A stretch of 64,000 nucleotides of DNA from sequence record LC765218.1; one strand, given 5' to 3'. Shown here one piece after another: positions 1,327-18,576 of this stretch (the stretch's first letter is position 1; the number at the start of each line of letters is the position of its first letter). The notes under the pieces are model-generated. The model saw nothing but the letters and a program-made list of their open reading frames with translations, did no database searches and was not told the DNA's origin. The translations under genes were made by a program, and so were the position numbers.

Positions 1327-1665
1327 ATGTCTCGTAAACTCGGAAAGAAACATCCTCGCAATCGTTACGAAGATGCTAAGGCATATGAACACAAGTTGCG
1401 CACTGAGAAAGCCCAACTGGCGAACTGCCGACTGGGGCAATTGTATTCGGTTCGTATCCTGAACGACAACTGCTTCTTGCGTGATCGCCTCATGTGCCAG
1501 GAACAGGATATGTTCGATCCTCATCGCCTGACCCGTGCTAAACGGGAACGTTATCTCAAAGGTGAGCGCTATTGGCTCAATGCTGGATCGGGTAAATTCA
1601 TTCGTTCTGGCTATGAAAAGAACTGGGCTAAAAATAAACGTAAGGAGATGGCAAATGAGCAGTAG
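1327..1665 (+). CDS. Basic hypothetical protein (112 aa)
   Basis: RBS AGGA before ATG; Arg/Lys-rich; in operon. Confidence 0.8.
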   Translation: MSRKLGKKHPRNRYEDAKAYEHKLRTEKAQLANCRLGQLYSVRILNDNCFLRDRLMCQEQDMFDPHRLTRAKRERYLKGERYWLNAGSGKFIRSGYEKNWAKNKRKEMANEQ

Positions 1666-1939
1666 TTATAACCCACCGGTGGACACTGTTGATGTCCTCC
1701 ATATCGACTGCGAGTACGAAACGTTCTCGTTCGGTAAGTTGTTTCAACGTATGGTCGATCACTTCGGCAGCGATATCAAGCTGGATGATTTCGAAATCGA
1801 AGCAACCAAGATCAAAGTACGTGGTTGCAGCTGTTGTTTGGATCTGGATGACTACACGGATTATATTCGTGTAACTCGTCTTACCCAACCCGCCGCCGAT
1901 ACCGAGACCCTATCGATCGAAGGTCTTATTGTCGGTTGA
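1655..1939 (+). CDS. Hypothetical protein (94 aa, MSSSYNPP...)
   Basis: ATG at 1655 after AAGGAG, overlapping the end of the previous gene; the track's start at 1535 is probably too early. Confidence 0.75.
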   Translation: MSSSYNPPVDTVDVLHIDCEYETFSFGKLFQRMVDHFGSDIKLDDFEIEATKIKVRGCSCCLDLDDYTDYIRVTRLTQPAADTETLSIEGLIVG

Positions 1940-1975
1940 CGGCATAAAGCCCCTACCGGAAGGTAGGGGCTAAAT
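1939..1975 (+). terminator. CATA-arm hairpin element (terminator-like)
   Basis: ACGGCATAAA-GCCCCTACC-GGAA-GGTAGGGGC-TAAAT directly at the stop codon. Confidence 0.8.
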
Positions 1976-2099
1976 CCCATTTCTTTTCGCCAAAGAGTTC
2001 GTCTCGGGCATTGCGCGTTTTGGGCACTAACCCAGCAGTAGGAATAAGAAGTAACGCGTAATCTCCTTACATACTATCAGCCAATAGGTATTATTTCAC

Positions 2100-2654
2100 A
2101 TGGACAAAAAACTGAAAGAATTCCAAACAGTGACTCCGGGTGTAGATCGTTTCGTTTATTACGAGAAAACTGACACCTGGCTCCCCAAAGATACTCGCCC
2201 AATGGACTGTTTCCGCAATAAGAAAGCAATAGAGGCATTCGATAAAGCCAACGAAGAAATTCAAGAACGTTGGTTCTATTGGTGCATCGCATGGGAGAAA
2301 GCTTCTGTTCGCCCTACAATGGAAACCGAACTCTGGAAGAACCCGTTCATCTCTGTTGAAGAACGACTGGAGATTGCAGAAGGCGCCATCGCGTTCCGTA
2401 ACGAGGTCATCAGAAATCTCCAGGGGCGTTTAGTTTCGCCAACGATTACCGAGTTCAAACTTAACGACGAAATGGTGGAAGCTATCTTGGATAGCAGTTA
2501 CACTGTAAAAGATTTCGATCGGAACTCGGAAACGGGCGAAGTAGAGCTTCAGTATCAGATTTCCAATAACTTCCACAATCGCGAGTTGGCACGTGATACT
2601 GTTCACCGTATCATCAATGCCCTCAAACAACTTACCCCGGTGCAACAGCAATGA
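2100..2654 (+). CDS. Hypothetical protein (184 aa)
   Basis: Long ORF with typical codon usage; ATGA overlap with the next gene. Confidence 0.85.
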   Translation: MDKKLKEFQTVTPGVDRFVYYEKTDTWLPKDTRPMDCFRNKKAIEAFDKANEEIQERWFYWCIAWEKASVRPTMETELWKNPFISVEERLEIAEGAIAFRNEVIRNLQGRLVSPTITEFKLNDEMVEAILDSSYTVKDFDRNSETGEVELQYQISNNFHNRELARDTVHRIINALKQLTPVQQQ

Positions 2655-7488: not shown

Positions 7489-9714
7489 ATGAAAGACCTT
7501 AAATCTCTGTTCAAAGTGAACGGCGACCGCGACCTGACTCGTTTCTCCATGGAATCCTTCCTTGGTAAACTGGACCTGGAAAAAGACTACGGCGACAGCA
7601 TCCTGTCCGCTGGTAGCAAACTGATTAGTAAGATCGGTCTGGAAAACTTCGGCCAACTGAGCGACGAAGATGCTCAAAGTGCTGCTGGTATGTACGCTAG
7701 CCTGCAAAAAGTTGCCCGTCAGTGTGGCTTCGAATCCTTCGAAGGCGCTAACAGCCGTGTAGGCGAAAACCAACTGTCCGCTGCCACCATGGCTGCCCTG
7801 GCAATGTCCAACTCCACTGAGTACGTTAAGGCTCTGAAACAAGTTGGTAAGAAAATTGCTTCCACTGACAAGAACGTCATTTCGGTTGAACACCGTTTCG
7901 ACGGCCCGGCTGGTTCGATCCAAACTTTCGAAGCTGCTGCTGGCGTCGGTCTGGAAAACTACAACGAGAAATCCCAGCGTGACTTCCGCGTTGTGACCGT
8001 TGGTTATAACCTGGCCGCTTCCCGTCAGGATGAGTTCGCTGAGCGTATCTATCCGACCACCGTTATCAACCCGATTGAAGGTGGTGTTGTTCAGGTTCTT
8101 CCGTACATCGCGGTAATGAAAGACGTTTACCACGCTGTTTCCGGTCAGAAGCTCGACAACCAAGAAGTCAACATGGTTGAAGCCTATCGTGATCCGTCCA
8201 TCCTGGACGACGAGTGCACTGCACTGATCCCGGCTATCGATCCTGCTGGCACTAACCTGAAGTACTTCGCTGATCCGGCTCTGCTGCCTCCGGTAACCGT
8301 TATCAACGAACAAAACATGTCCATCGAAACTGCTCCGCTGAAGCCGGGCGTTAAACTGGACCTGATGGGTAACTCGAACGCCAACCTGCTGATCAACAAA
8401 GGCATGCTGGACATTTCGGATACCATCGATCCGTCGGGCCGCCTGAAGGCTCTGTACGTTAAGTTCCAAGGTAAAGTCATCAAGTTCCAAACTGAACGTC
8501 TGCCGCGCGCAGTGTTCCAGCCGGACCTGGTTGGTGATACCCGCGGTGCCAAGATCGACTTCTGGTCGGATGACCTGACTGTTTCGGCCGTAACCCGCAC
8601 TACTGACGCTGCACAAACTGCTGGCATGAAAGAACTGGAACAACGTAAGTGGGTTCTGCGTCTGAGCATGCAATTCAGTGGTCACATCAGCCTGAGCCGT
8701 GGCGATAGCCGTTTCACCATCGGTGAAGTAACTATCGATCGCATCCTGGACGAAGACAAGCGTCGCATCGACCTGGAAACTGGCGATGGTAAAGCTCTGG
8801 CCGACAGCATTGGCGAAATGGAAATCGTTGGTTTCGACCTCGACACCCGCTTCACCAACACTAACCGCCGTCAGCGTGGTCACCTGCTGCAAACTCGTGC
8901 CCTGCAATTCCGTCACCCGATTCCGATGCATGCTCCGGTTACCCTGCCGCTGAGCACCATGGACGAAGAAGGTCCGGGCGAAGTTGTTAAGGCTCTGACT
9001 GTCAACACCAACATCCGTAACAGCAACAACGCTGTTAAGCGCCTGCTGAACTACCTGGCTCAGCTGAAAGAAGTAACCGCTAACGGTTTCGACCGTCCGC
9101 AGTTCGGTGCTGTTGAAGGTGCTCTGTCCGCAGTAATGCGTCCGACCTACCGCTACAAGAAGCTGCACCTGCCTGACATGATCGACACCCTGAAGTCGCA
9201 AGACCGTTGGGAAGACGTCTGCTCGGCAATCCTGAACGCTGTTAAAGGTGTACTGTTCCCGGCTTACCGTGAATCCAACATCGAAGCAGCTTTCCGCGTG
9301 ATCTCCGGTAACCAAGACGAGCGTCCGATGTTCCTGTTCTGCTCGGACAAAGAGATCGCTAACTACCTGATGACCAAGGGCGACGATCGTACCCTGGGCG
9401 CTTACCTGGAATACGACCTGGTATCGACCAACAACGAACTGTTCGACGGCAAGCTGGTAGTGATTCCGACCCGTAAGACTCCGCAAGAGAACGACATCCT
9501 CAGCTTCGGTCAATTCTACTACGTATCGACCGTAATCGCCGACCTGCCGATCACCCGTGGTGGCCAGCAAGTTACTCGCGAAATCGCTGCGATTCCGTTC
9601 AACCTGCACGTTAACAACATCCCGTTCGCTCTCGAATTCGACGTTACTGGCTTCGAAGAAGTGATGGGTGAGTCTCAGTGGAACAAGCCCCTGGTTGAAG
9701 CCGTAAAAGGTTGA
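7489..9714 (+). CDS. Major capsid protein precursor (phiKZ gp120-like)
   Basis: 741 aa with extreme high-expression codon bias; N-terminal propeptide with repeated S/G-X-E protease sites; size and position match phiKZ gp120. Confidence 0.93.
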   Translation: MKDLKSLFKVNGDRDLTRFSMESFLGKLDLEKDYGDSILSAGSKLISKIGLENFGQLSDEDAQSAAGMYASLQKVARQCGFESFEGANSRVGENQLSAATMAALAMSNSTEYVKALKQVGKKIASTDKNVISVEHRFDGPAGSIQTFEAAAGVGLENYNEKSQRDFRVVTVGYNLAASRQDEFAERIYPTTVINPIEGGVVQVLPYIAVMKDVYHAVSGQKLDNQEVNMVEAYRDPSILDDECTALIPAIDPAGTNLKYFADPALLPPVTVINEQNMSIETAPLKPGVKLDLMGNSNANLLINKGMLDISDTIDPSGRLKALYVKFQGKVIKFQTERLPRAVFQPDLVGDTRGAKIDFWSDDLTVSAVTRTTDAAQTAGMKELEQRKWVLRLSMQFSGHISLSRGDSRFTIGEVTIDRILDEDKRRIDLETGDGKALADSIGEMEIVGFDLDTRFTNTNRRQRGHLLQTRALQFRHPIPMHAPVTLPLSTMDEEGPGEVVKALTVNTNIRNSNNAVKRLLNYLAQLKEVTANGFDRPQFGAVEGALSAVMRPTYRYKKLHLPDMIDTLKSQDRWEDVCSAILNAVKGVLFPAYRESNIEAAFRVISGNQDERPMFLFCSDKEIANYLMTKGDDRTLGAYLEYDLVSTNNELFDGKLVVIPTRKTPQENDILSFGQFYYVSTVIADLPITRGGQQVTREIAAIPFNLHVNNIPFALEFDVTGFEEVMGESQWNKPLVEAVKG

Positions 9715-9798
9715 ACTGGAAAGGGTACCTTCCGTAAGCTTGAAAATGGTACTACCCGTTATCTTGAAGACGGAGTGGCCCGCCGCCTAGAGCGGTAA
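9715..9798 (+). other. Putative stop-codon readthrough extension of the capsid protein (TGKGTFRKLENGTTRYLEDGVARRLER*)
   Basis: 27 in-frame sense codons after TGA; last 21 aa are 11/21 identical, ungapped, to the C-terminus of CDS 36051..36584; no independent start codon or RBS. Confidence 0.7.
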
Positions 9799-9822
9799 AG
9801 CGGAAGTGTTAAGCTGACTGCT

Positions 9823-9864
9823 GGCATAACAGCCTCTACCTTCGGGTAGAGGCTTTATGTCGTC
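9823..9864. terminator. CATA/TATG-arm hairpin terminating the capsid transcript
   Basis: GGCATAAC-AGCCTCTACC-TTCG-GGTAGAGGCT-TTATGTCGTC. Confidence 0.85.
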
Positions 9865-9884
9865 ATTAAAAAATATTTCAAATC

Positions 9885-9892
9885 TATATTAC
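9885..9892 (+). promoter_or_regulatory. Putative early (virion RNAP) promoter TATATTAC
   Basis: Exact phiKZ early motif with an AT-rich upstream tract (AAAAAATATTTCAAATC), heading the unit that contains the nvRNAP subunit. Confidence 0.65.
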
Positions 9893-9930
9893 GGTATTGA
9901 AGAATCATTCCCTAATTAGAGGATCAGACA

Positions 9931-10410
9931 ATGTTCTGGAATACACACGGGCATCATGTTGAGCAAGAGCTCACTGATTCCCAAATGAATCCTGGCGACA
10001 TTGTCGTCATGAAAGAAAATACTACGGTTAGTAATAATACGTCTAACCAAACCAATTCTCAAACCACCACTACTATTCATCCTACCCAGGATGAGAATAT
10101 GTTCCATTTTGCTAATCGCTTCGAGAAGCAAATAAGACATGTTAATATATCCAATGGCCGTTGTTATGAATCGGGAGGTACCCCTGAAGAAAAACAACGT
10201 TCGCGCAACACGCGGAAGGGTAAAGGTAAAACGCGTGTTGCGCATGGGAAACGTGGAGACAGAAATCATAGAGATTCGAAAGCATCCCAAACGAGTCGAT
10301 ATGAACCTAGTCAAGAACGGAGTAGGCCCAAAGGACGTAAAGTAGAAATGGTATTGGATAGGATTGTTTTAAATGGTAAAGATCAACCGTTCCCGTGCGG
10401 GTCATATTGA
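9931..10410 (+). CDS. Hypothetical low-complexity/basic protein (159 aa)
   Basis: RBS GAGGA at good spacing after the early promoter; overlaps a second plausible ORF and the next gene, so its extent is uncertain. Confidence 0.5.
   Translation: MFWNTHGHHVEQELTDSQMNPGDIVVMKENTTVSNNTSNQTNSQTTTTIHPTQDENMFHFANRFEKQIRHVNISNGRCYESGGTPEEKQRSRNTRKGKGKTRVAHGKRGDRNHRDSKASQTSRYEPSQERSRPKGRKVEMVLDRIVLNGKDQPFPCGSY
10139..10345 (+). CDS. Small basic protein in an alternative frame (up to 68 aa)
   Basis: Protein-like sequence (KVKRVLRMGNVETEIIEIRK) ending 27 nt before the next gene; start uncertain. Confidence 0.4.
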   Translation: MLIYPMAVVMNREVPLKKNNVRATRGRVKVKRVLRMGNVETEIIEIRKHPKRVDMNLVKNGVGPKDVK

Positions 10411-11410
10411 GGACGATCCCGTACTGGAGTGTCCTCTTGACACATCGTACATGGACAGATGGCAGACATCTGTTTTCCAAAACATTTTCTTCGGTCAAGG
10501 TCTCGTCGATAAACGTGTACGTTACTTAAACCAATCGACGCATGAAATAAGTATTATCGATGGAACAGGTATTGTCCTGGATCTACCGGGTACTAACCGT
10601 ATTGAAAATAGACTTGTTATTTGTATCAACTTTACATGGGGTGGCGATGTAGAACTTAATATCGGGGCGATGATTAAACATTGGCCTAATCTCACTCAAG
10701 AATATCTGGAACAACTAGTAGGTTCTGTTAAGAACAAAGGAACCAACACGCCATGTGAACTGGATTTCTATTTCATTGTTGACCTTGACCACATCGATAC
10801 CGATCCTTATGGGCTTTGGATCGAAGCGCTCAACGTTCAAGTAGTTTCCACAGATCGAGCGAAGAAGACTACATTCTTCCCGCGCGATTGTTTCTTCTCG
10901 AAGAACGATGAACTCTACCGTCAGGAAGATATCATCTGGACTACTACTACAACTGTTGCTTATTTCGTAGACGATGAGCGTATAACCGAAAGTGTATTTA
11001 TGCCATTCGGCAGCGATCTACTTGAGGTAAAGCCTGTCTTCATGCCAGATATGCCTGTTGGTATTCATATTAACCTAAGGGGTAATGTGACATTTGCAGC
11101 ACGACGGGATAATGCGAAAGCGATTGTTATCAAACCTGGAGACTTTAAGAAGTATGGCATCTATTCCAGTTTACGTGAATGGAGAGAAGCTGTAAAGGAA
11201 AGTACAAAAGGAATGTCAAAGGAAGATGCTCAGAGACGTATGGATTGTTTTGATATGTTCCATCGACATCTATACGACGAAGAACTCGAACCTTTGGCTG
11301 TGAGAGATATCATCCTGTTTAGGGATATATCAGTTGGAACTGTCATGGACTTCTTAGCTGAAGTAGCCAAGGCAGATGCATTGCTCGAAAAGATATTCCG
11401 AAAGCGATAG
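10373..11410 (+). CDS. Hypothetical protein (345 aa; phiKZ gp122 position)
   Basis: Long ORF with RBS GGATAGG, directly upstream of the nvRNAP subunit. Confidence 0.85.
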   Translation: MVKINRSRAGHIEDDPVLECPLDTSYMDRWQTSVFQNIFFGQGLVDKRVRYLNQSTHEISIIDGTGIVLDLPGTNRIENRLVICINFTWGGDVELNIGAMIKHWPNLTQEYLEQLVGSVKNKGTNTPCELDFYFIVDLDHIDTDPYGLWIEALNVQVVSTDRAKKTTFFPRDCFFSKNDELYRQEDIIWTTTTTVAYFVDDERITESVFMPFGSDLLEVKPVFMPDMPVGIHINLRGNVTFAARRDNAKAIVIKPGDFKKYGIYSSLREWREAVKESTKGMSKEDAQRRMDCFDMFHRHLYDEELEPLAVRDIILFRDISVGTVMDFLAEVAKADALLEKIFRKR

Positions 11411-11415
11411 GAGGG

Positions 11416-13044
11416 GTGATGGACCCGTACGTAATCAGTAGGATTGATGGTGTCATACCCAAGCTAAATAAAGATTTAGCCAATGGGCTTGCAGTAAAGC
11501 ACATGATGGAGATCAACCCAGAAACAGGCATGAACGCAACTCGTGCATATGTTGATAAGTTGTTTGAAATCAACTCGGCGCTATTCCCTGCTGACTTCAA
11601 GTATCATGGAAACCGTCTGTGTAAACCCGAAGTTCATTTCGAAGAGATAACCCGTGAGTATGGCTCTAAGCGTGTAGCAAATATCGCCGAGAGTAATACG
11701 TACATGATCGAGCTGATCACTAGCTATAAAGGCGAAATGATGTTCCCACGAAGGGTACTATTGCCATATGTTCGTGATGGTGGTATCTGTACGCTCAATG
11801 GTGCAACCTATTCGATCTCTCCGGTGTTGACTGATGTCGGCTTCTCGGTATTGAATGGCAGTATCTTCATTCCATTCCGGCGTGCCAAACTGACGTTTAA
11901 GCAAGTTGACCACCACTACATGTGTAATGGTCAGCGTGAAGTGATGTATGTGATCTGGTCTCAGATTCACAACGAAATGTCTAAACGCACTAAACGTGAT
12001 TTGGATAACCGGCAGCACATCGAGTCGTGTCTTGCACATTACTTCTTCTGTGAGTTTGGTGTCGTTGAAACGTTCAAGCGTTGGGCTGGAGTAGATATCC
12101 AAATTGGATATCTGAAAGACTTTCCTGAGTCCCAGTATCCGCGTGATCAATGGAACGTTTATGAATCTGCGGTTCTGAAACGTCGTCATCCAACTGGAGA
12201 TATGGTTCTGGTTCTACCCAAAGACAAGGAGACAGACTTTGTCCGTCGACTCGTTGCAGGGTTCTGGTACGTCGTAGATGCATTCCCAAGCCGGTTCTAC
12301 GAGCCGAGCTACATGGATAATAAACAGCTATGGCGAATCATTCTCGGTCTGATGATCTTTGGTGACTTCGAGCATCAAGGTAAAATTGCTGAGAACATTG
12401 AATCTCACCTGGATAGCTTCAACAACTCTCTGGATGAGATGACCATTGAAGAACTTCGTTCAGTTGGAGTGAAAGTCAATACCATCTGGGAACTGCTATA
12501 TGCGATCATGACAGATATGGCACACCATCTGTATGCCACTGACATTGATGAAACTAGTATGTACGACAAACGCCTGAGTATTCTTAGGTATGTGATGGCA
12601 GAGTTTAACTATGCTGTCTCCATGTTTGCGTATACGTTCCAAGGTCGTAAAGATAAAGAGTGGACTGGACAGGAAATCAACGATGCCCTGAAACGTTCAT
12701 TCAAACTCAATACGTGCATTAAGAAACTTACCAGTGAACACGGTGAGCTCGACACACTGTCGTCTCCTGGTGATAGCAAGGTTATTAAAGTAACCTCGAT
12801 CCTTGTACCGCAGGATCGCGCGAAGACTTCTAAAGCACACAACAAATCACTAATCGGTGATAGCTCTCGTCTAATCCACGCTTCGATCGCGGAGGTGGGC
12901 CAATACAAAAACCAACCGAAAAACAACCCGGATGGTCGTGGCCGACTAAACCTCTTCGTCGGAGTTAGATACGACGGATTGGTTGAACGACGTGAAGAAG
13001 ATCGTGAACTTATTGACAAAGCTCAACAACGTTTTGTCTCTTAA
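11416..13044 (+). CDS. Non-virion RNA polymerase beta-like subunit, N-terminal part (phiKZ gp123-like)
   Basis: 542 aa; GGICTLNGATYSISPVL resembles the beta G-x-F-I-I-N-G region; C-terminal NNPDGRGRLN; size and synteny match gp123. Confidence 0.85.
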   Translation: MMDPYVISRIDGVIPKLNKDLANGLAVKHMMEINPETGMNATRAYVDKLFEINSALFPADFKYHGNRLCKPEVHFEEITREYGSKRVANIAESNTYMIELITSYKGEMMFPRRVLLPYVRDGGICTLNGATYSISPVLTDVGFSVLNGSIFIPFRRAKLTFKQVDHHYMCNGQREVMYVIWSQIHNEMSKRTKRDLDNRQHIESCLAHYFFCEFGVVETFKRWAGVDIQIGYLKDFPESQYPRDQWNVYESAVLKRRHPTGDMVLVLPKDKETDFVRRLVAGFWYVVDAFPSRFYEPSYMDNKQLWRIILGLMIFGDFEHQGKIAENIESHLDSFNNSLDEMTIEELRSVGVKVNTIWELLYAIMTDMAHHLYATDIDETSMYDKRLSILRYVMAEFNYAVSMFAYTFQGRKDKEWTGQEINDALKRSFKLNTCIKKLTSEHGELDTLSSPGDSKVIKVTSILVPQDRAKTSKAHNKSLIGDSSRLIHASIAEVGQYKNQPKNNPDGRGRLNLFVGVRYDGLVERREEDRELIDKAQQRFVS

Positions 13045-13067
13045 ACTTCTCAAATAGGAAAAGTCAG

Positions 13068-15131
13068 ATGTACAACCAACAAGCTCAACTCCCGGTATCC
13101 TGCCAACAAGTCGATCAGAGTACCTTTAATGGTAATCTGCCTCATGGCAATGACCGGGTACCTCAACTCCAACTCAGCCAGAACCTGATGAATAACCAAC
13201 AGCTGGTGCTCATGGCTATTGGTCTGTTCCGTGGGCTTGCGCAATCGTCGGTTGGAAAAAGCAACCTTCATATTTTCGCGTACAACCTGCTGTCGTCGAA
13301 CTGGTTCCAAAACCAGATCTTCCAACAATGGTGTCAGCACCTGGTGGATTTCGTTGAGTTCCTGTGTGTCTGCAAGAACTACAGTCAGACGGATGCTCCG
13401 CCGAAAGCTGCACAGCGTATGTATGAAGCGTTCCTTGGTCAATGCGTTGCATCGTATCCTGCTCTCGTGCAAATGGGTGCAGTTCCGCAACATATGTTCC
13501 AAGGTCTGCAAACTGCTCAAGCCATGTATCAGCAGATCCTCCAAGAGATTCAAGCGTACAAATCTGGTAACTATCGTCCCCAACAACAGCAAATGGGAAT
13601 GATGGGTCAACCGCAAGGTATCCAGATGGCAGGTAATTTGCCTCCCATTAACCCAGGTAACATGGGACAGTTCGCAACAACCACCCAAGCTACTTTCTCT
13701 CAACCCGCTGGTACTTATGGCGCAGCGCCAAACACGGTATCGAGCACCACCAGTTCGTATTACGATGATACTCCGGCTGCATCTGCTCCCCTGATGCCGA
13801 AGGAAGAGATCAGTACTGATATTTACGGTGGCTACTCCCATCAACAGGAGCAACAACCGATGTACAGTCAACAACCGCAAGTGCAAAATACACCCGTTGT
13901 GGAAGATACTGATCTCCCTGTTCCGATCGACGTATCTCAGGTGATGATCGATCCGATGTATTACCAACCTACTGGTTTCCGTGTAAACATCGCTCGTCCT
14001 TACGATGAGATTCATAACCCTGGGGGAATTCTGATTAAACCGGCACAACTGGTTGATTGGGAACGGACCGTTGGTGATGAAGATCCGTACAGTCCTCTGG
14101 TTGATCCGGAACACTATTGCCGTTTCTTCGTCAAGTTCCCCGATGGTGTAGTAAAAGAGAAATTCATTGAATGGAACCCGCAAATGGAATACCTGAAACA
14201 CGAACTGAATGATGACCTGCGTCGTCGTGAATATCGTCCTAACGGTGTGGTATATGCTTCCACCACTCCCATCTCTACTATCGGTGGAGATGCAATGGGT
14301 ATTGAAGAAGTAGAAAGCCTCGTCAAGGATAATGAACTCGGTGAAGCGGCGGCAATGCGTCCGATCATTCTTGATAATAAGATGTTCATGGGTGCTAACG
14401 ATCTCGAAAACGAATCTGAAGCACGTGCTGCTGTTCGGGAACTCCTGAACATTGGTGACGACGAAGAATCGCAGTCGATCACACTGCCTGCACACGAATA
14501 TAAATCGATGAGCATCTATCACATGGATGTTAGCGATGAAACCTTCGAGCAGCTGAGTAATCTGCGTAACTATACCGATCTGATCGGGATTGCTACCGAA
14601 CTGAAAGAAATGGTAAATCGCGGTCAACTGAGCATCCGCTATTTCCGTTTCCTGAATGATCGTCTGACCGATTCCATCAATGACTTCATGGCAGATAGCC
14701 TGTCGATCCAAAATATCACCATCAGTGATTTCGCACATGACATCGGTGATCTGCTGGATTACATCAGTAACAAGAAAGGTGTGCAAGTACTGCAAATCAT
14801 CAAAGCGTGTGCAGCTCAAATTATCGCTCGTTCGGTAACGATGGCTGAGGTTGATGATATCCGTGGTGTTGCCGATCAGTACGTTAACTTCCAGGTAGGT
14901 TGGACTCTTGAACAGATGGCCACTCTGAACGTTCTGACCGAGAAAGCCGTCCTTGTTTCTGAAGGAACTCACCCTACTGTTCGTGAAGTGCTGAAAGGTA
15001 TGATCACTCGTGCTACGGCATCTGGCCTTGCTAATGTCCGTATGCGGTTGATCACCGTTGATGGCGTTTACATGGAAGTTATTCGTGGACGTCTGACCGA
15101 GAAAGCGGTTCTGTTGAAGCGCCTGAAGTAA
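13068..15131 (+). CDS. Large hypothetical protein with Gln/Pro-rich disordered linker (phiKZ gp124 position)
   Basis: 687 aa; PQQQQMGMMGQPQGIQMAG...QQEQQPMYSQQPQVQ segment; high-expression codon bias. Confidence 0.85.
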   Translation: MYNQQAQLPVSCQQVDQSTFNGNLPHGNDRVPQLQLSQNLMNNQQLVLMAIGLFRGLAQSSVGKSNLHIFAYNLLSSNWFQNQIFQQWCQHLVDFVEFLCVCKNYSQTDAPPKAAQRMYEAFLGQCVASYPALVQMGAVPQHMFQGLQTAQAMYQQILQEIQAYKSGNYRPQQQQMGMMGQPQGIQMAGNLPPINPGNMGQFATTTQATFSQPAGTYGAAPNTVSSTTSSYYDDTPAASAPLMPKEEISTDIYGGYSHQQEQQPMYSQQPQVQNTPVVEDTDLPVPIDVSQVMIDPMYYQPTGFRVNIARPYDEIHNPGGILIKPAQLVDWERTVGDEDPYSPLVDPEHYCRFFVKFPDGVVKEKFIEWNPQMEYLKHELNDDLRRREYRPNGVVYASTTPISTIGGDAMGIEEVESLVKDNELGEAAAMRPIILDNKMFMGANDLENESEARAAVRELLNIGDDEESQSITLPAHEYKSMSIYHMDVSDETFEQLSNLRNYTDLIGIATELKEMVNRGQLSIRYFRFLNDRLTDSINDFMADSLSIQNITISDFAHDIGDLLDYISNKKGVQVLQIIKACAAQIIARSVTMAEVDDIRGVADQYVNFQVGWTLEQMATLNVLTEKAVLVSEGTHPTVREVLKGMITRATASGLANVRMRLITVDGVYMEVIRGRLTEKAVLLKRLK

Positions 15132-15162
15132 ACATAAGTGTCCCTCTTCGGAGGGACCTTTT
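15132..15162 (+). terminator. CATA-arm hairpin element
   Basis: ACATAAGT-GTCCCTC-TTCG-GAGGGAC-CTTTT. Confidence 0.8.
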
Positions 15163-15176
15163 CATAGGAAAATGAG

Positions 15177-15587
15177 ATGTTATCATTTGAAAATGGAGTA
15201 GGCGTAGAATTCATTGCTTTAGATCGACTTCCAAAATACATGCATGTGAATTATGAAGTCAGTAAGTTTAGCAATGATATTCGTTCCGGCGTGATCGCTT
15301 GTGAGTTTGGTCATCCTAAGATGACAGGTAACATTGAAACAGACTACAAACGAGCAACATCCATCAACTGCAATAATGGTGCAGCTTTAGTACTCGGTAT
15401 CGACCCTGTACATGAGAAAGCTAAACTCATTGGCTTCAACGTATACATCCGTCCATTCGGGCCCAATCATGATCGGATGCATGCGATGATCAAGAACGAT
15501 ATTCCAATGCGACTTGGTGTACGCGGCCTCAAGAATGCGGCTGGTGTATTGAAAGAAATTATCACATTCGACATATTGTCAGATTGA
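15177..15587 (+). CDS. Prohead-protease-fold paralogue 1, catalytic Ser absent
   Basis: CEFGHP...R..SI....IRPFGP...LGVRGL mirrors the GELNHP...GP...GVSSRG motifs of T4 gp21/phiKZ gp175-type proteases, with Gly at the Ser position. Confidence 0.6.
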   Translation: MLSFENGVGVEFIALDRLPKYMHVNYEVSKFSNDIRSGVIACEFGHPKMTGNIETDYKRATSINCNNGAALVLGIDPVHEKAKLIGFNVYIRPFGPNHDRMHAMIKNDIPMRLGVRGLKNAAGVLKEIITFDILSD

Positions 15588-15591
15588 TAAC

Positions 15592-15620
15592 TAGCCCCTC
15601 ATTAGAGGGGCTATATGTCC
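15592..15620. terminator. TATG-arm hairpin element
   Basis: TAGCCCCTC-ATTA-GAGGGGCTA-TATGTCC. Confidence 0.75.
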
Positions 15621-15636
15621 CTCTAGGAGCAGAGTA

Positions 15637-16176
15637 ATGAAATTCGAAAAACTACCGAATGCCAAATATCGGGTAACCGTTTCCTTCGATGAAATGCGCC
15701 AACGTATGGTCGCTGGTATTCGCCGGGATCTTGCCGTACTCGGTGAAGAACGAGTAGAAGCAATCGTTGAAAATGCATTTGGTTTGAGTCAACTTCACCT
15801 GTGGGTGAATTCTTCTTTTGTTAAGAAGAATGAACTCCTGTTGACAGGAATCGAATTAGGTCATCCCCAAGTAAAAGTATCTTCACTTGAAAATATTATT
15901 CTTCGTTCTCTAGTAGTAGATGCAAATCGTGTATGTGCTACTATTGATAGTTGGTCCATTCAATATAGTAACACCATCAATACACCACATGTATTGATTT
16001 TGGATGTTACCGCAGCAGGTCCCTTGGCCCGTGATCTGAATGCCCTTTATAATCTGCTTCCTCTTACAGTTGGGTTTAGATATCAACTGAATGACAATGA
16101 GCAGGTGGTTGATATTGTAGGTATCGATATCCTCTATGAAGATGATTTCGATAATCCTGTATTTAAAGATAAATAA
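15637..16176 (+). CDS. Prohead-protease-fold paralogue 2, catalytic Ser absent
   Basis: IELGHP...R..VVDANRVCATI...VTAAGP...VGFRY; same motif order as the neighbouring ORF; RBS AGGAG. Confidence 0.6.
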   Translation: MKFEKLPNAKYRVTVSFDEMRQRMVAGIRRDLAVLGEERVEAIVENAFGLSQLHLWVNSSFVKKNELLLTGIELGHPQVKVSSLENIILRSLVVDANRVCATIDSWSIQYSNTINTPHVLILDVTAAGPLARDLNALYNLLPLTVGFRYQLNDNEQVVDIVGIDILYEDDFDNPVFKDK

Positions 16177-16229
16177 CGCCTATATCACAGAGGTGATATA
16201 AATACACTCTATCAAAAGGAAATTGCAAA

Positions 16230-16934
16230 ATGAATCAGGTTTTCAACGCTGTAAAATCCATGTTCATTCCGTCTCATCGTGAAGTGTTCGGTAAGGCAAT
16301 TCGTGATGTAGAACATGATATGGATTTCTTTGAAACCATAATGGACGCTAGCAGTTATAGTCCAACTGAACTCCCTAAAGGCAAAGGAGAGAGTATGTCT
16401 ATTGATGTCCTTACTGTCGATGATCTTCCTTTGCGGGGTGATCCTGAGGCAACTTACAAAGTAACTTCTACTTTGGATTTGTATCGTTGGGTTAATGGGG
16501 AATATGTTGTACATAACCCTTACCTCGATCCAGTCGTGCAAAGTTCTGGTGAAAGAGCAGTGATTGTTGATCCAACCGCAACTCTGCCACATCTGACCGA
16601 GGAACATCTCCGTAAAGGTGGTGACATCAGACTGGCCATGGTTTATAATGTTCGGGCTCTGCGTGAAGATCTCCGTCGCATGGAACTTCTGAACATTTCC
16701 ATGGAGTCGCTGCTACCGCGTAATCTCCGTGTTAAAGACCTTGACGTACCAGGTATGTTCCTTTCCACTAACCACACCATCCTGACTCGTCAACTGAAGT
16801 CCATCATGCGTGGTAAAGGTAACTATGATAAATATGTCGTAGAAGGCCTGGCTCGCATGGGTGTTGATGTATGGTACGATGAAGCTAAACGTAAAGTTGG
16901 CTTTAAAGATGGCACTTTCGTGGCGCTGGTGTAA
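16230..16934 (+). CDS. Hypothetical protein, possibly virion-associated (234 aa)
   Basis: RBS AAGGA; contains an S-M-E protease-type site; preceded by the early-like TATATCAC at 16181. Confidence 0.8.
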   Translation: MNQVFNAVKSMFIPSHREVFGKAIRDVEHDMDFFETIMDASSYSPTELPKGKGESMSIDVLTVDDLPLRGDPEATYKVTSTLDLYRWVNGEYVVHNPYLDPVVQSSGERAVIVDPTATLPHLTEEHLRKGGDIRLAMVYNVRALREDLRRMELLNISMESLLPRNLRVKDLDVPGMFLSTNHTILTRQLKSIMRGKGNYDKYVVEGLARMGVDVWYDEAKRKVGFKDGTFVALV

Positions 16935-17207
16935 ATGTCTGTCTTCGGTTATGTATTGACGTGGACTCAGGAATTTCACATGTGGTTCCTGATAGCTGTT
17001 CTCGCTGCTTTCTTTGCTCTTTATCTAAATCATCGGTTTAGGTATCTCATCTACGTGCCATTTGAAAAGATTGGCAAACGTGATTTCATTAAGATGTCCC
17101 TTACTTCAATTACAATGCTGTTGTGTATTGTCGTTGTATTTGGGGCTACTCTACGAATGATCGAGATGAAAGAGATCGATAGAGTATGGTCGATTGAACG
17201 GCGATGA
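16935..17207 (+). CDS. 2-TM membrane protein (90 aa)
   Basis: MWFLIAVLAAFFALYL and ITMLLCIVVVFGATL helices; abuts the previous stop. Confidence 0.75.
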   Translation: MSVFGYVLTWTQEFHMWFLIAVLAAFFALYLNHRFRYLIYVPFEKIGKRDFIKMSLTSITMLLCIVVVFGATLRMIEMKEIDRVWSIERR

Positions 17208-17210
17208 GTA

Positions 17211-17260
17211 ACAACATAAAGCCCTCTCCTTCGGGAGAGGGCGATATGCTTTATTTTTTT
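17211..17260. terminator. Bidirectional CATA/TATG-arm hairpin between convergent units
   Basis: ACAACATAAA-GCCCTCTCC-TTCG-GGAGAGGGC-GATATGC followed by a T-tract. Confidence 0.85.
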
Positions 17261-17688
17261 TATTTCTCGAAACTTAATTCAACTTGTGAAGTTGGAATGT
17301 AGGCTAGAGAACGAGTAGTGGGTTTTAAAATAACCGTATTACCAGTTAGAGGACCATCTAGGAATTCATCAGTATCGACGGGTACAGTCACTTTATCACG
17401 GAGTACTTTAATAACATCATGGATAGTTGAATAATCAATTCTCTTCCCTGGAATAACAACCCCATTGAGAGCTTCTTCAATTCGATATCGATTAAAGAAT
17501 ATTTGTTTCTGTCCTTTAAAATACTTGCTTGTCCCAACAGCCTGAATAGTAGCTCTTGAGTTATTACCGTTCTGCAACCATATTTCAATACCAGTCCAAA
17601 TAACATCCTCAGGACGAATAGCTGGATCCAACTTGTTCTGAATACTAAACTGTTGGAGTAGTTTAGATTTCATGTTTTTAACGTGCAT
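17260..17688 (-). CDS. Putative virion structural protein, Y/F-x-R-L-x-L paralogue family
   Basis: NNSRATIQAV...YFKGQKQIFFNRYRI pattern shared with the CDSs at 17698, 36051 and 54263. Confidence 0.65.
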   Translation of the reverse strand: MHVKNMKSKLLQQFSIQNKLDPAIRPEDVIWTGIEIWLQNGNNSRATIQAVGTSKYFKGQKQIFFNRYRIEEALNGVVIPGKRIDYSTIHDVIKVLRDKVTVPVDTDEFLDGPLTGNTVILKPTTRSLAYIPTSQVELSFEK

Positions 17689-17697
17689 CTCTACTCC

Positions 17698-18576
17698 TTA
17701 GTTATAATGAATTCTAATTTCGCCAACGACATCCTGACATAAAGTTTTATGTAACTCGATAACAAGTACATTTTGTATATCAGTACGCCCACTAAATCGA
17801 GGTAGTACAATGCCATTATAAATGATCCTGTACTTTAGAACCCCTATTTCTTCAGTATAAGCGATGTTGTGAGAAGCTGGTGTCTTTGATGCTGTCCAAG
17901 GTTTATTCGTCACCTCAGCGAGAATAGCGGCCATCTTCTTAGGATCTGGATGGGTACCAGCCTTTGTTAGATGACGAAGATACTCTCTATGTTCACTAAA
18001 GTCATATCCAGTGATGTAATAAGTACCATTGATCAGTGAAAGATCATTAGCTTTAACATTGTCAGGTTTACCTACGTCAGGGAATTCAACTTTACTGAAA
18101 GTAGATAATTCCTTTCGTAGCGTATTAATCAAACGAACCCGAAGAAAACCTACAAAACGAAGAGACTTTTTATTCGCATGGAGAATGAATTCTTGGTTGA
18201 ATACATTATACTCGGTATGTTCGAAATCATCTACATCAAAAACAATGTTATTTAACTCGGATAATTTTTCGACAACCTTTAAACTGGAATATGGAGTATC
18301 CACATTCGATAAATCAAGCACTTGGGTTTGTCTAAAAAATGTCGTCAAATCTAATCGATCGTACGTATAAGTATCGAGTTCGACTTCCGGTAGTAAGTTA
18401 CCGGAAGCCTTACTGCGATTTACACTTATAACAATACGAGTCTTGGTACCACCCAGTGATTCGAACTGTTCAAGCTTAGTACTACCCGGAAACAATTGGG
18501 TAAAACAAGCATCGTTGATCATGTCGATTATAGATGTCCAAGGAGTAGACTGTAAATAGTCTCTCGTAATGTACAT
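17698..18576 (-). CDS. Putative virion structural protein, Y-x-R-L-D-L paralogue family
   Basis: IIDMIN...TKTRIVI...TYTYDRLDLTTFF; co-oriented with the baseplate gene. Confidence 0.7.
   Translation of the reverse strand: MYITRDYLQSTPWTSIIDMINDACFTQLFPGSTKLEQFESLGGTKTRIVISVNRSKASGNLLPEVELDTYTYDRLDLTTFFRQTQVLDLSNVDTPYSSLKVVEKLSELNNIVFDVDDFEHTEYNVFNQEFILHANKKSLRFVGFLRVRLINTLRKELSTFSKVEFPDVGKPDNVKANDLSLINGTYYITGYDFSEHREYLRHLTKAGTHPDPKKMAAILAEVTNKPWTASKTPASHNIAYTEEIGVLKYRIIYNGIVLPRFSGRTDIQNVLVIELHKTLCQDVVGEIRIHYN

Follow-up and report, generated by a model that had tools for sequence, protein, structure and literature searches.

The first 64,000 nucleotides of the genome of Pseudomonas phage BRkr (LC765218.1), the window analyzed here, contain two adjacent small genes, which raise the question of what their products are, whether they cut other proteins, and what they may do if they do not. 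This phiKZ-like jumbo phage has a genome of 306 kb and belongs to the PA1C/Pawinskivirus group. In LC765218.1 both open reading frames are already annotated as coding sequences for hypothetical proteins (RVBP21_0180 and RVBP21_0190), and their counterparts in the records of close relatives carry the automatic annotation "head maturation protease." An initial annotation made from the DNA sequence proposed that ORF1 and ORF2 are tandem prohead-protease paralogues with the catalytic His intact but Gly at the position of the nucleophile Ser, and that both are catalytically dead. The two genes and their neighbors are as follows.

7489-9714: major capsid gene, the first gene of the block containing ORF1 and ORF2
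11416..13044, plus strand: nvRNAP subunit, phiKZ gp123 homologue (phrog_2943, E 9.7e-203)
13068..15131, plus strand: phiKZ gp124 homologue, 687 aa (phrog_15010, E 5e-236, and synteny), directly upstream of ORF1
15140..15157, no strand: GC-rich stem-loop at the junction of the gp124-like gene and ORF1 (terminator-like scan and sequence)
15177..15587, plus strand: ORF1, 136 aa, short pseudo-protease of the gp21/S80 fold, orthologue of PhiPA3 gp143
about 15592-15613: similar hairpin at the ORF1/ORF2 junction
15637..16176, plus strand: ORF2, 179 aa, second short pseudo-protease lineage, orthologue of PhiPA3 gp142
about 16181-16200: similar hairpin at the junction of ORF2 and the gp125-like gene
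16230..16934, plus strand: phiKZ gp125 homologue, 234 aa (phrog_14839, E 1.5e-59, and synteny), directly downstream of ORF2

The block is co-directional and runs from the major capsid gene through two small genes, the nvRNAP subunit gene (whose product is 70% identical to proteins annotated as non-virion RNAP subunit in phiKZ-type records) and the gp124 homologue to ORF1, ORF2 and the gp125 homologue. The initial annotation placed the pair downstream of the nvRNAP subunit, which is correct, "rather than in a late head operon," which was overstated. Since the major capsid gene heads the block, which abuts, on its 3' side and on the opposite strand, virion-protein genes and then a portal homologue, the pair is not remote from head genes. 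At each junction around ORF1 and ORF2 a short stem-loop is followed by a ribosome-binding site; in the case of the hairpin 3' of ORF1, TATG and a ribosome-binding site come next. Stem-loops occur at nearly all junctions of the block (another lies at 17221-17242), and 16 terminator-like sites were observed in the region 9500-17800 compared with 5.7 expected from shuffles. A reading of ORF1 as part of an 856-aa open frame was rejected because three stop codons separate the gp124-like gene from ORF1.

We then analyzed the two translations. ORF1 carries C-E-F-G-H46-P, R59-A-T-S-I, F-G95-P, L-G114-V-R116 and F-D132-I-L, and ORF2 carries I-E-L-G-H76-P, R90-S-L-V-V, A-G128-P, V-G146-F-R148 and I-D164-I-L, so that the ordered series E-x-G-H-P, R-x-x-x-I/V, G-P and G-x-R claimed initially was found in both proteins, whose reading frames lie at precisely the stated coordinates. 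The agreement goes well beyond chance: an alignment of the two proteins spans 120 residues, with 22% identity. The motifs that correspond to the active site of the true protease are encoded at the following positions.

15303..15317, plus strand: ORF1 E43-F-G-H46-P47 loop, catalytic-His motif kept, aligned to E87-x-x-H90-P91 of the true protease
15513..15524, plus strand: ORF1 L-G114-V-R116, with Gly (GGT) at the nucleophile-Ser position and Arg kept (columns S176 and R178 of the true protease)
15570..15572, plus strand: ORF1 D132, third triad residue kept, 4 residues before the end of the protein
15853..15867, plus strand: ORF2 E73-L-G-H76-P77 loop
16069..16080, plus strand: ORF2 V-G146-F-R148, with Gly (GGG) at the nucleophile-Ser position
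16126..16128, plus strand: ORF2 D164, Asp kept

Homology to proteases was assessed with sequence profiles. Against the Pfam family Peptidase_S80 (PF20034), ORF1 scored 21.0 bits (E 2e-4) and ORF2 15.4 bits (E 0.01), both below the gathering cut-off of 23.4 bits, while the true BRkr protease scored 324 bits. Both also matched PHROG 7478, a 147-position "head maturation protease" family (E 5.8e-5 for ORF1 and 1.8e-10 for ORF2). When a profile of 17 short proteins was compared with a profile of 20 diverse true S80 proteases using hhalign, the two families aligned over 119 columns with 99.4% probability and an E value of 1.5e-21, and H46 was paired with H90, G114 with S176, R116 with R178 and D132 with D199. 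In a scan of the whole BRkr genome, the short-family profile recognized three places only: ORF1, ORF2 and the true protease.

The predicted structures agreed with the profiles. AlphaFold2 models built from the 17-protein alignment were confident (pLDDT 94.5 and pTM 0.86 for ORF1; pLDDT 86.5 for ORF2), and ORF2 differed in having a longer helical insert after the first two strands. Using Foldseek against the PDB, we found T4 gp21 (5JBL) as the single outstanding match, with a probability of 1.00 for the ORF1 model and 0.97 for the ORF2 model; the runners-up had scores of about 6, and herpesvirus proteases appeared further down the list. In a library of predicted viral structures, ORF1 resembled many uncharacterized jumbo-phage proteins of 125 to 160 aa, including three of Phabio, gp206 and gp210 of 201phi2-1, and proteins of Psa21, Erwinia phage RAY and Yersinia and Klebsiella phages, followed by prohead proteases of the T4 type. 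Protease-fold homology by profile and Foldseek search had been set beforehand as the test of the proposal. Such homology was found, and with the matching residue map it bears out the description of the pair as tandem prohead-protease paralogues.

Other searches defined how narrow the family is. A HMMER profile made from ORF1, ORF2 and close orthologues retrieved only about a dozen true relatives among 1.8 billion representatives, all of them short phage proteins; four large matches (three LRR/Death-domain proteins and one TPR protein) were discarded as repeat-driven false positives. Scans of IMG/VR with the ORF1 or ORF2 protein yielded no relatives, and a word-based protein search found nothing beyond the PA1C-group orthologues. 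Sequence-profile searches of the PDB with the short family or the true proteases did not reach T4 gp21, and their matches to IolI and ribosomal L12 were judged to be chance. A phmmer search with the true protease gave no match.

BRkr also encodes a true prohead protease of the gp175/S80 type. This protein has 277 aa and is encoded outside the window, at 72030-72743 of the phage genome; the reading frame occupies 1441-2274, minus strand, of the segment BRkr 70530-74243. Across 20 true S80 proteases the invariant residues are, in BRkr numbering, E87, H90, P91, R116, H128, S176-V-R178-S179 and D199, and the motifs read G-E-[YF]-K-H-P and [FC]-S-V-R-S, which is close to the true-enzyme motifs quoted in the initial annotation. 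By analogy with SPN3US gp245 (H77, S153 and D178), the putative catalytic triad of the BRkr enzyme is H90, S176 and D199. The corresponding residues of the three BRkr proteins are listed below.

H90 of the true enzyme: H46 in ORF1, H76 in ORF2
H128 of the true enzyme: L in ORF1, T in ORF2
S176 of the true enzyme: G114 in ORF1, G146 in ORF2
R178 of the true enzyme: R116 in ORF1, R148 in ORF2
S179 of the true enzyme: G in ORF1, Y in ORF2
D199 of the true enzyme: D132 in ORF1, D164 in ORF2

The map confirms that both copies have kept the His and carry Gly instead of Ser. Past the Asp, the true enzymes run on for about 78 residues with invariant positions of their own. ORF1 ends 4 residues and ORF2 15 residues past the Asp, and both are thus without this C-terminal tail. 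In SPN3US, the C-terminal region of the protease is cleaved off by the enzyme itself; its inferred role is to direct the protease into the prohead (PMC5694885). With the nucleophile Ser, the second His and the tail all missing, ORF1 and ORF2 should be unable to cut by a serine mechanism and are probably not packaged. The loss of H128, S179 and the whole tail thus strengthens the proposal of catalytic death, which had been based on the Ser alone. Neither protein reaches the PF20034 threshold, has a complete His-Ser-Asp triad or carries the C-terminal extension of the active S80 proteases; both have the features of the short diverged paralogue family (PHROG 7478), including a length far below the 277 aa of the phage's own protease. 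We are confident that ORF1 and ORF2 are noncatalytic prohead-protease paralogues of the S80/gp21 fold, encoded by real, accessory genes under selection, and that they are probably not packaged.

Paralogues of this type have been described before. Thomas et al. (2017) named SPN3US gp117, PhiPA3 gp143 (136 aa) and 201phi2-1 gp206 (145 aa) as diverged prohead-protease paralogues whose genes lack a counterpart of the 3' portion of the protease gene (PMC5694885). ORF1 and ORF2 belong to the same family, being short, without the C-terminal region and additional to a real protease. In the BRkr pair, His and Asp remain and Ser is lost; SPN3US gp117 is reported to have kept Ser and Asp, with no His at the aligned position (PMC5694885). 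With the phiKZ gp175 family (MEROPS S80/PF20034) the pair shares a homologous core and, in the same order, the motifs E-x-x-H-P, R, G-P, x-R and D. It differs from that family in its sub-threshold Pfam scores, the change of Ser176 to Gly, the loss of H128 and S179, the missing tail and a 10 to 20 times faster evolution. The core fold of the models is also common to T4 gp21 (PDB 5JBL), which has the herpesvirus assemblin-like fold, but the identity is only 10 to 17%, Pfam Peptidase_U9 gives no match, and ORF1 and ORF2 have no nucleophile.

The short family was then compared position by position. In the alignment of 17 short paralogues the Gly of G-P, the Arg and the Asp were invariant, and the Glu and Pro of the E-x-x-H-P loop were nearly so. 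Among 27 short paralogues the Arg was still invariant, and the Asp was kept in all except Psa21_310. The His was often substituted, and the Ser position held Gly in 15 proteins, Ser in 4 and Ala, Asp, Lys, Val or Asn in the rest. The variability of the Ser position suggests that a nucleophile is not needed there. As far as the alignments go, it is only the motifs of the former active-site cleft that are held constant across the short family, and this restriction suggests that the cleft may still bind something. Alternatively, it may be the stability of the fold, and not ligand binding, that has preserved the Arg, Asp, Glu, Pro and Gly. The family is not dead throughout, since in a few members (201phi2-1 gp210 and a metagenomic orthologue of ORF2) the His, Ser and Asp occur together. 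Of these, gp210 (125 aa; segment 12058-12435) is a second, previously unnamed short paralogue of 201phi2-1, with the motifs E-R-H-P, P-S-A-R and F-D-L.

In a maximum-likelihood tree, ORF1 and ORF2 fell into separate clades with supports of 97/91 and 100/100, respectively. Each clade contained members from BRkr/PA1C/Temi, from PhiPA3 (gp143 and gp142, respectively) and from metagenomes. ORF1 and ORF2 are thus two anciently separated lineages, each of which is a minimal protease core with the fold kept. The true proteases formed a tight clade, and the branches of the short paralogues were 10 to 20 times longer. ORF1 and PhiPA3 gp143 share 43% identity (E 8e-25; 136 aa in both). Between BRkr and PhiPA3, the true protease is 79% identical and the pseudo-proteases are 43% (ORF1) and 29% (ORF2) identical.

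In BRkr, PA1C, HPP-Temi, PhiPA3 and two metagenomic contigs, the two genes adjoin each other and are flanked by the gp124 and gp125 homologues. In PhiPA3 (HQ630627.1, segment 7001-7935) the ORF2-type gene gp142 comes first and is followed on the same strand by the ORF1-type gene gp143; in the other five, the ORF1-type gene precedes the ORF2-type gene. Next to the PhiPA3 pair (segment 4845-6951), only a short 786-nt gene, gp140, is annotated for the gp124 homologue, and a 1455-nt ORF on the opposite strand, gp141, overlaps it. The relatives all carry one gene of about 2.1 kb at this site, and the PhiPA3 arrangement is probably a frameshift or a mis-annotation in the record.

The number of copies per phage varies from 0 to 3. 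Profile searches of whole phage records gave the following counts.

phiKZ-type phage (fMGyn-Pae01): 0 short copies
Goslar: 0 short copies
PCH45: 1 short copy
RAY: 1 short copy
BRkr: 2 short copies
PhiPA3: 2 short copies
201phi2-1: 2 short copies (gp206 and gp210)
Phabio: 3 short copies

In Psa21, the whole-record search found one clear copy, gene 310, and missed gene 175 in the gp124-gp125 slot, a weak candidate with an E value of 0.0094 against the family HMM. The same HMM matched 201phi2-1 gp206 with an E value of 1e-14. The genes adjoining the paralogues in three phages (201phi2-1 gp205, Phabio gp192 and Psa21 176) were considered and are not detectable members of the family. In the GenBank record of 201phi2-1, gp206 and gp210 lack the note "identified as virion protein by mass spectrometry" that their neighbors carry.

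Several copies lie elsewhere in their genomes. Phabio gp341 and gp342 (segment 4165-4937) adjoin genes for PRPP synthetase and NAMPT, Psa21_310 (segment 3884-4318) is near genes for thymidylate synthase and NAMPT, and a metagenomic member (contig segment 4001-4411) is placed downstream of ribonucleotide reductase, with genes for dCTP deaminase and DHFR on either side. A 311-aa metagenomic protein combines the pseudo-protease domain with a dNMP-kinase-like domain (phrog_139, E 9e-10), and the gene for this fusion adjoins a phage RNAP beta-like gene. The nucleotide- and NAD-metabolism neighbors and the fusion suggest that the fold may have a second role.

What, then, could a dead protease core do? 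On the initial suggestion that the pair could be S/A/G-X-E binding modules that time or inhibit prohead maturation, or decoys, indirect evidence points in both directions: the confinement of conservation to former active-site motifs favors a retained binding cleft, and the lack of the genes in phiKZ and Goslar, their varying number and position, the paralogues in nucleotide-metabolism islands and the non-essential PCH45 paralogue point the other way. We propose, tentatively and from the pattern of conserved residues, that the kept cleft binds the substrates of the protease or the protease and thereby modulates head maturation, possibly with the two proteins acting as a pair; taken singly, this role is possible, though short of probable. 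The likeliest ligands would be the protease or those segments of head or inner-body precursors that contain Glu and serve for recognition. The ORF1 and ORF2 proteins would then work in the cytoplasm, perhaps together, where they would modulate or chaperone head-maturation proteolysis while being dispensable and evolving fast. As a counterpoint, phiKZ-type phages and Goslar build heads without such a paralogue, so that any role in maturation would be optional. The explanation as a whole, in which inactive paralogues would serve as cleft-binding modulators of head maturation, is the best that we can offer, and we put its chances at about even.

A more sweeping model is rather improbable in our estimate. 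It holds that the Gly-for-Ser proteins of the gp21 fold are an old accessory family of nucleus-forming jumbo phages in which the cleft would have been kept as a noncutting peptide trap, that a heteromeric pair in BRkr- and PhiPA3-like phages would mask Glu-containing propeptides or the protease until the prohead is assembled, and that other lineages would have been recruited to nucleotide metabolism, including by fusion.

On the other hand, the fold may have been exapted for a job unrelated to the head, such as accessory binding or scaffolding, nucleotide-metabolism complexes, or host takeover or counter-defense, in which case the proximity to the capsid gene would be historical. We hold this reading to be possible, again short of probable, and about equally plausible as the modulation of head maturation. 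The nucleotide-metabolism islands and the dNMP-kinase-like fusion hint at such a role, and the change in copy number from 0 to 3, the shifting positions among related phages and the long branches relative to the true protease are consistent with it. PCH45 adds a genetic result. Its short paralogue (208566-209045, 159 aa) has F-G-Y-R-G with Gly at the Ser position and ends just past the Asp of W-D-L; from the order of protein accessions we deduced that it is gp220. In a Tn-seq study of PCH45, gp220 was non-essential and the true head protease (gp81, core gene cg60) was essential (bioRxiv 10.64898/2025.12.19.695335). Like ORF1 and ORF2, gp220 is short, has Gly for Ser and stops soon after the Asp; unlike the BRkr pair, it belongs to a phage of another genus, occurs in one copy only, at the end of the genome, and has Arg in place of the His. 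However, wherever the ORF1 and ORF2 lineages occur, they occupy the gp124-gp125 slot of the capsid-gene block without exception, and the residues conserved are those of the protease cleft. Furthermore, no NCBIfam model matches ORF1 or ORF2, and location in an accessory island of a jumbo phage is weak evidence of function.

It is very improbable that ORF1, ORF2 or both are still proteases, using another nucleophile (Cys42 of ORF1, or a water activated by His and Asp) or active only as a hetero-oligomer. This idea draws on the ORF1 clade, in which C42, E43, H46, P47 and D132 are all invariant and the Cys, four residues before the His, is specific to the clade, and on the invariant Arg beside the former nucleophile. 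However, no Ser, Thr or Cys is conserved as an alternative nucleophile across the short family, and H128 and S179 of the true enzyme are gone as well. In the ORF2 clade the His itself varies (Thr in PhiPA3 gp142 and Ser-Ile in one metagenomic orthologue), and the nucleophile position holds Gly, Ser or Asp. Cys42 probably points into the core, as judged from its place in a strand beside the nearly invariant Glu.

ORF1 and ORF2 are under purifying selection. Between BRkr and HPP-Temi, dN/dS was 0.05 for ORF1 and 0.08 for ORF2, similar to the neighboring genes, with dS saturated in this comparison. That the pair are decaying, functionless remnants of duplicated protease genes is the least likely reading, with hardly any weight: the catalytic residues and the tail are lost, divergence is very rapid and phiKZ has no copy, but the reading frames are intact in every member, dN/dS is as low as just given, both lineages have been kept across phage genera at 29 to 43% identity, the predicted folds are compact and confident, and each gene has its own ribosome-binding site.

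The gene type itself was known, since the ORF1 orthologue PhiPA3 gp143 was named a diverged paralogue in 2017 (PMC5694885). That report does not name the lineage of ORF2 and PhiPA3 gp142, nor does it report how prevalent Gly is at the Ser position or that the Arg and Asp are invariant (PMC5694885). A literature search for functional follow-up on the short protease paralogues found none. New here are the second lineage and the conservation of two old lineages as a pair; the family-wide Gly/Arg/Asp pattern, with Gly at the Ser position as the family norm and conservation confined to the cleft motifs; the contrast in evolutionary rate with the enzyme; the variation in copy number, including the absence from phiKZ; and the associations with nucleotide metabolism. 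Nothing established is overturned by these results, and the pair offers a clean, testable system.

Cellular pseudo-proteases are known to regulate active paralogues, as cFLIP does with caspase-8 and as iRhoms do. Like ORF1 and ORF2, these are dead paralogues that stand beside an active protease; the folds are unrelated, and the comparison is one of analogy only. In the maturation of phiKZ-like heads, many head and inner-body proteins are processed, and premature cutting must be prevented. If our reading of a cleft-binding modulator is true, viruses would have a simple solution to premature cutting by the protease, namely a dead paralogue bound to the enzyme or its substrates, and ORF1 and ORF2 would be a rare case of a viral pseudo-protease regulator.
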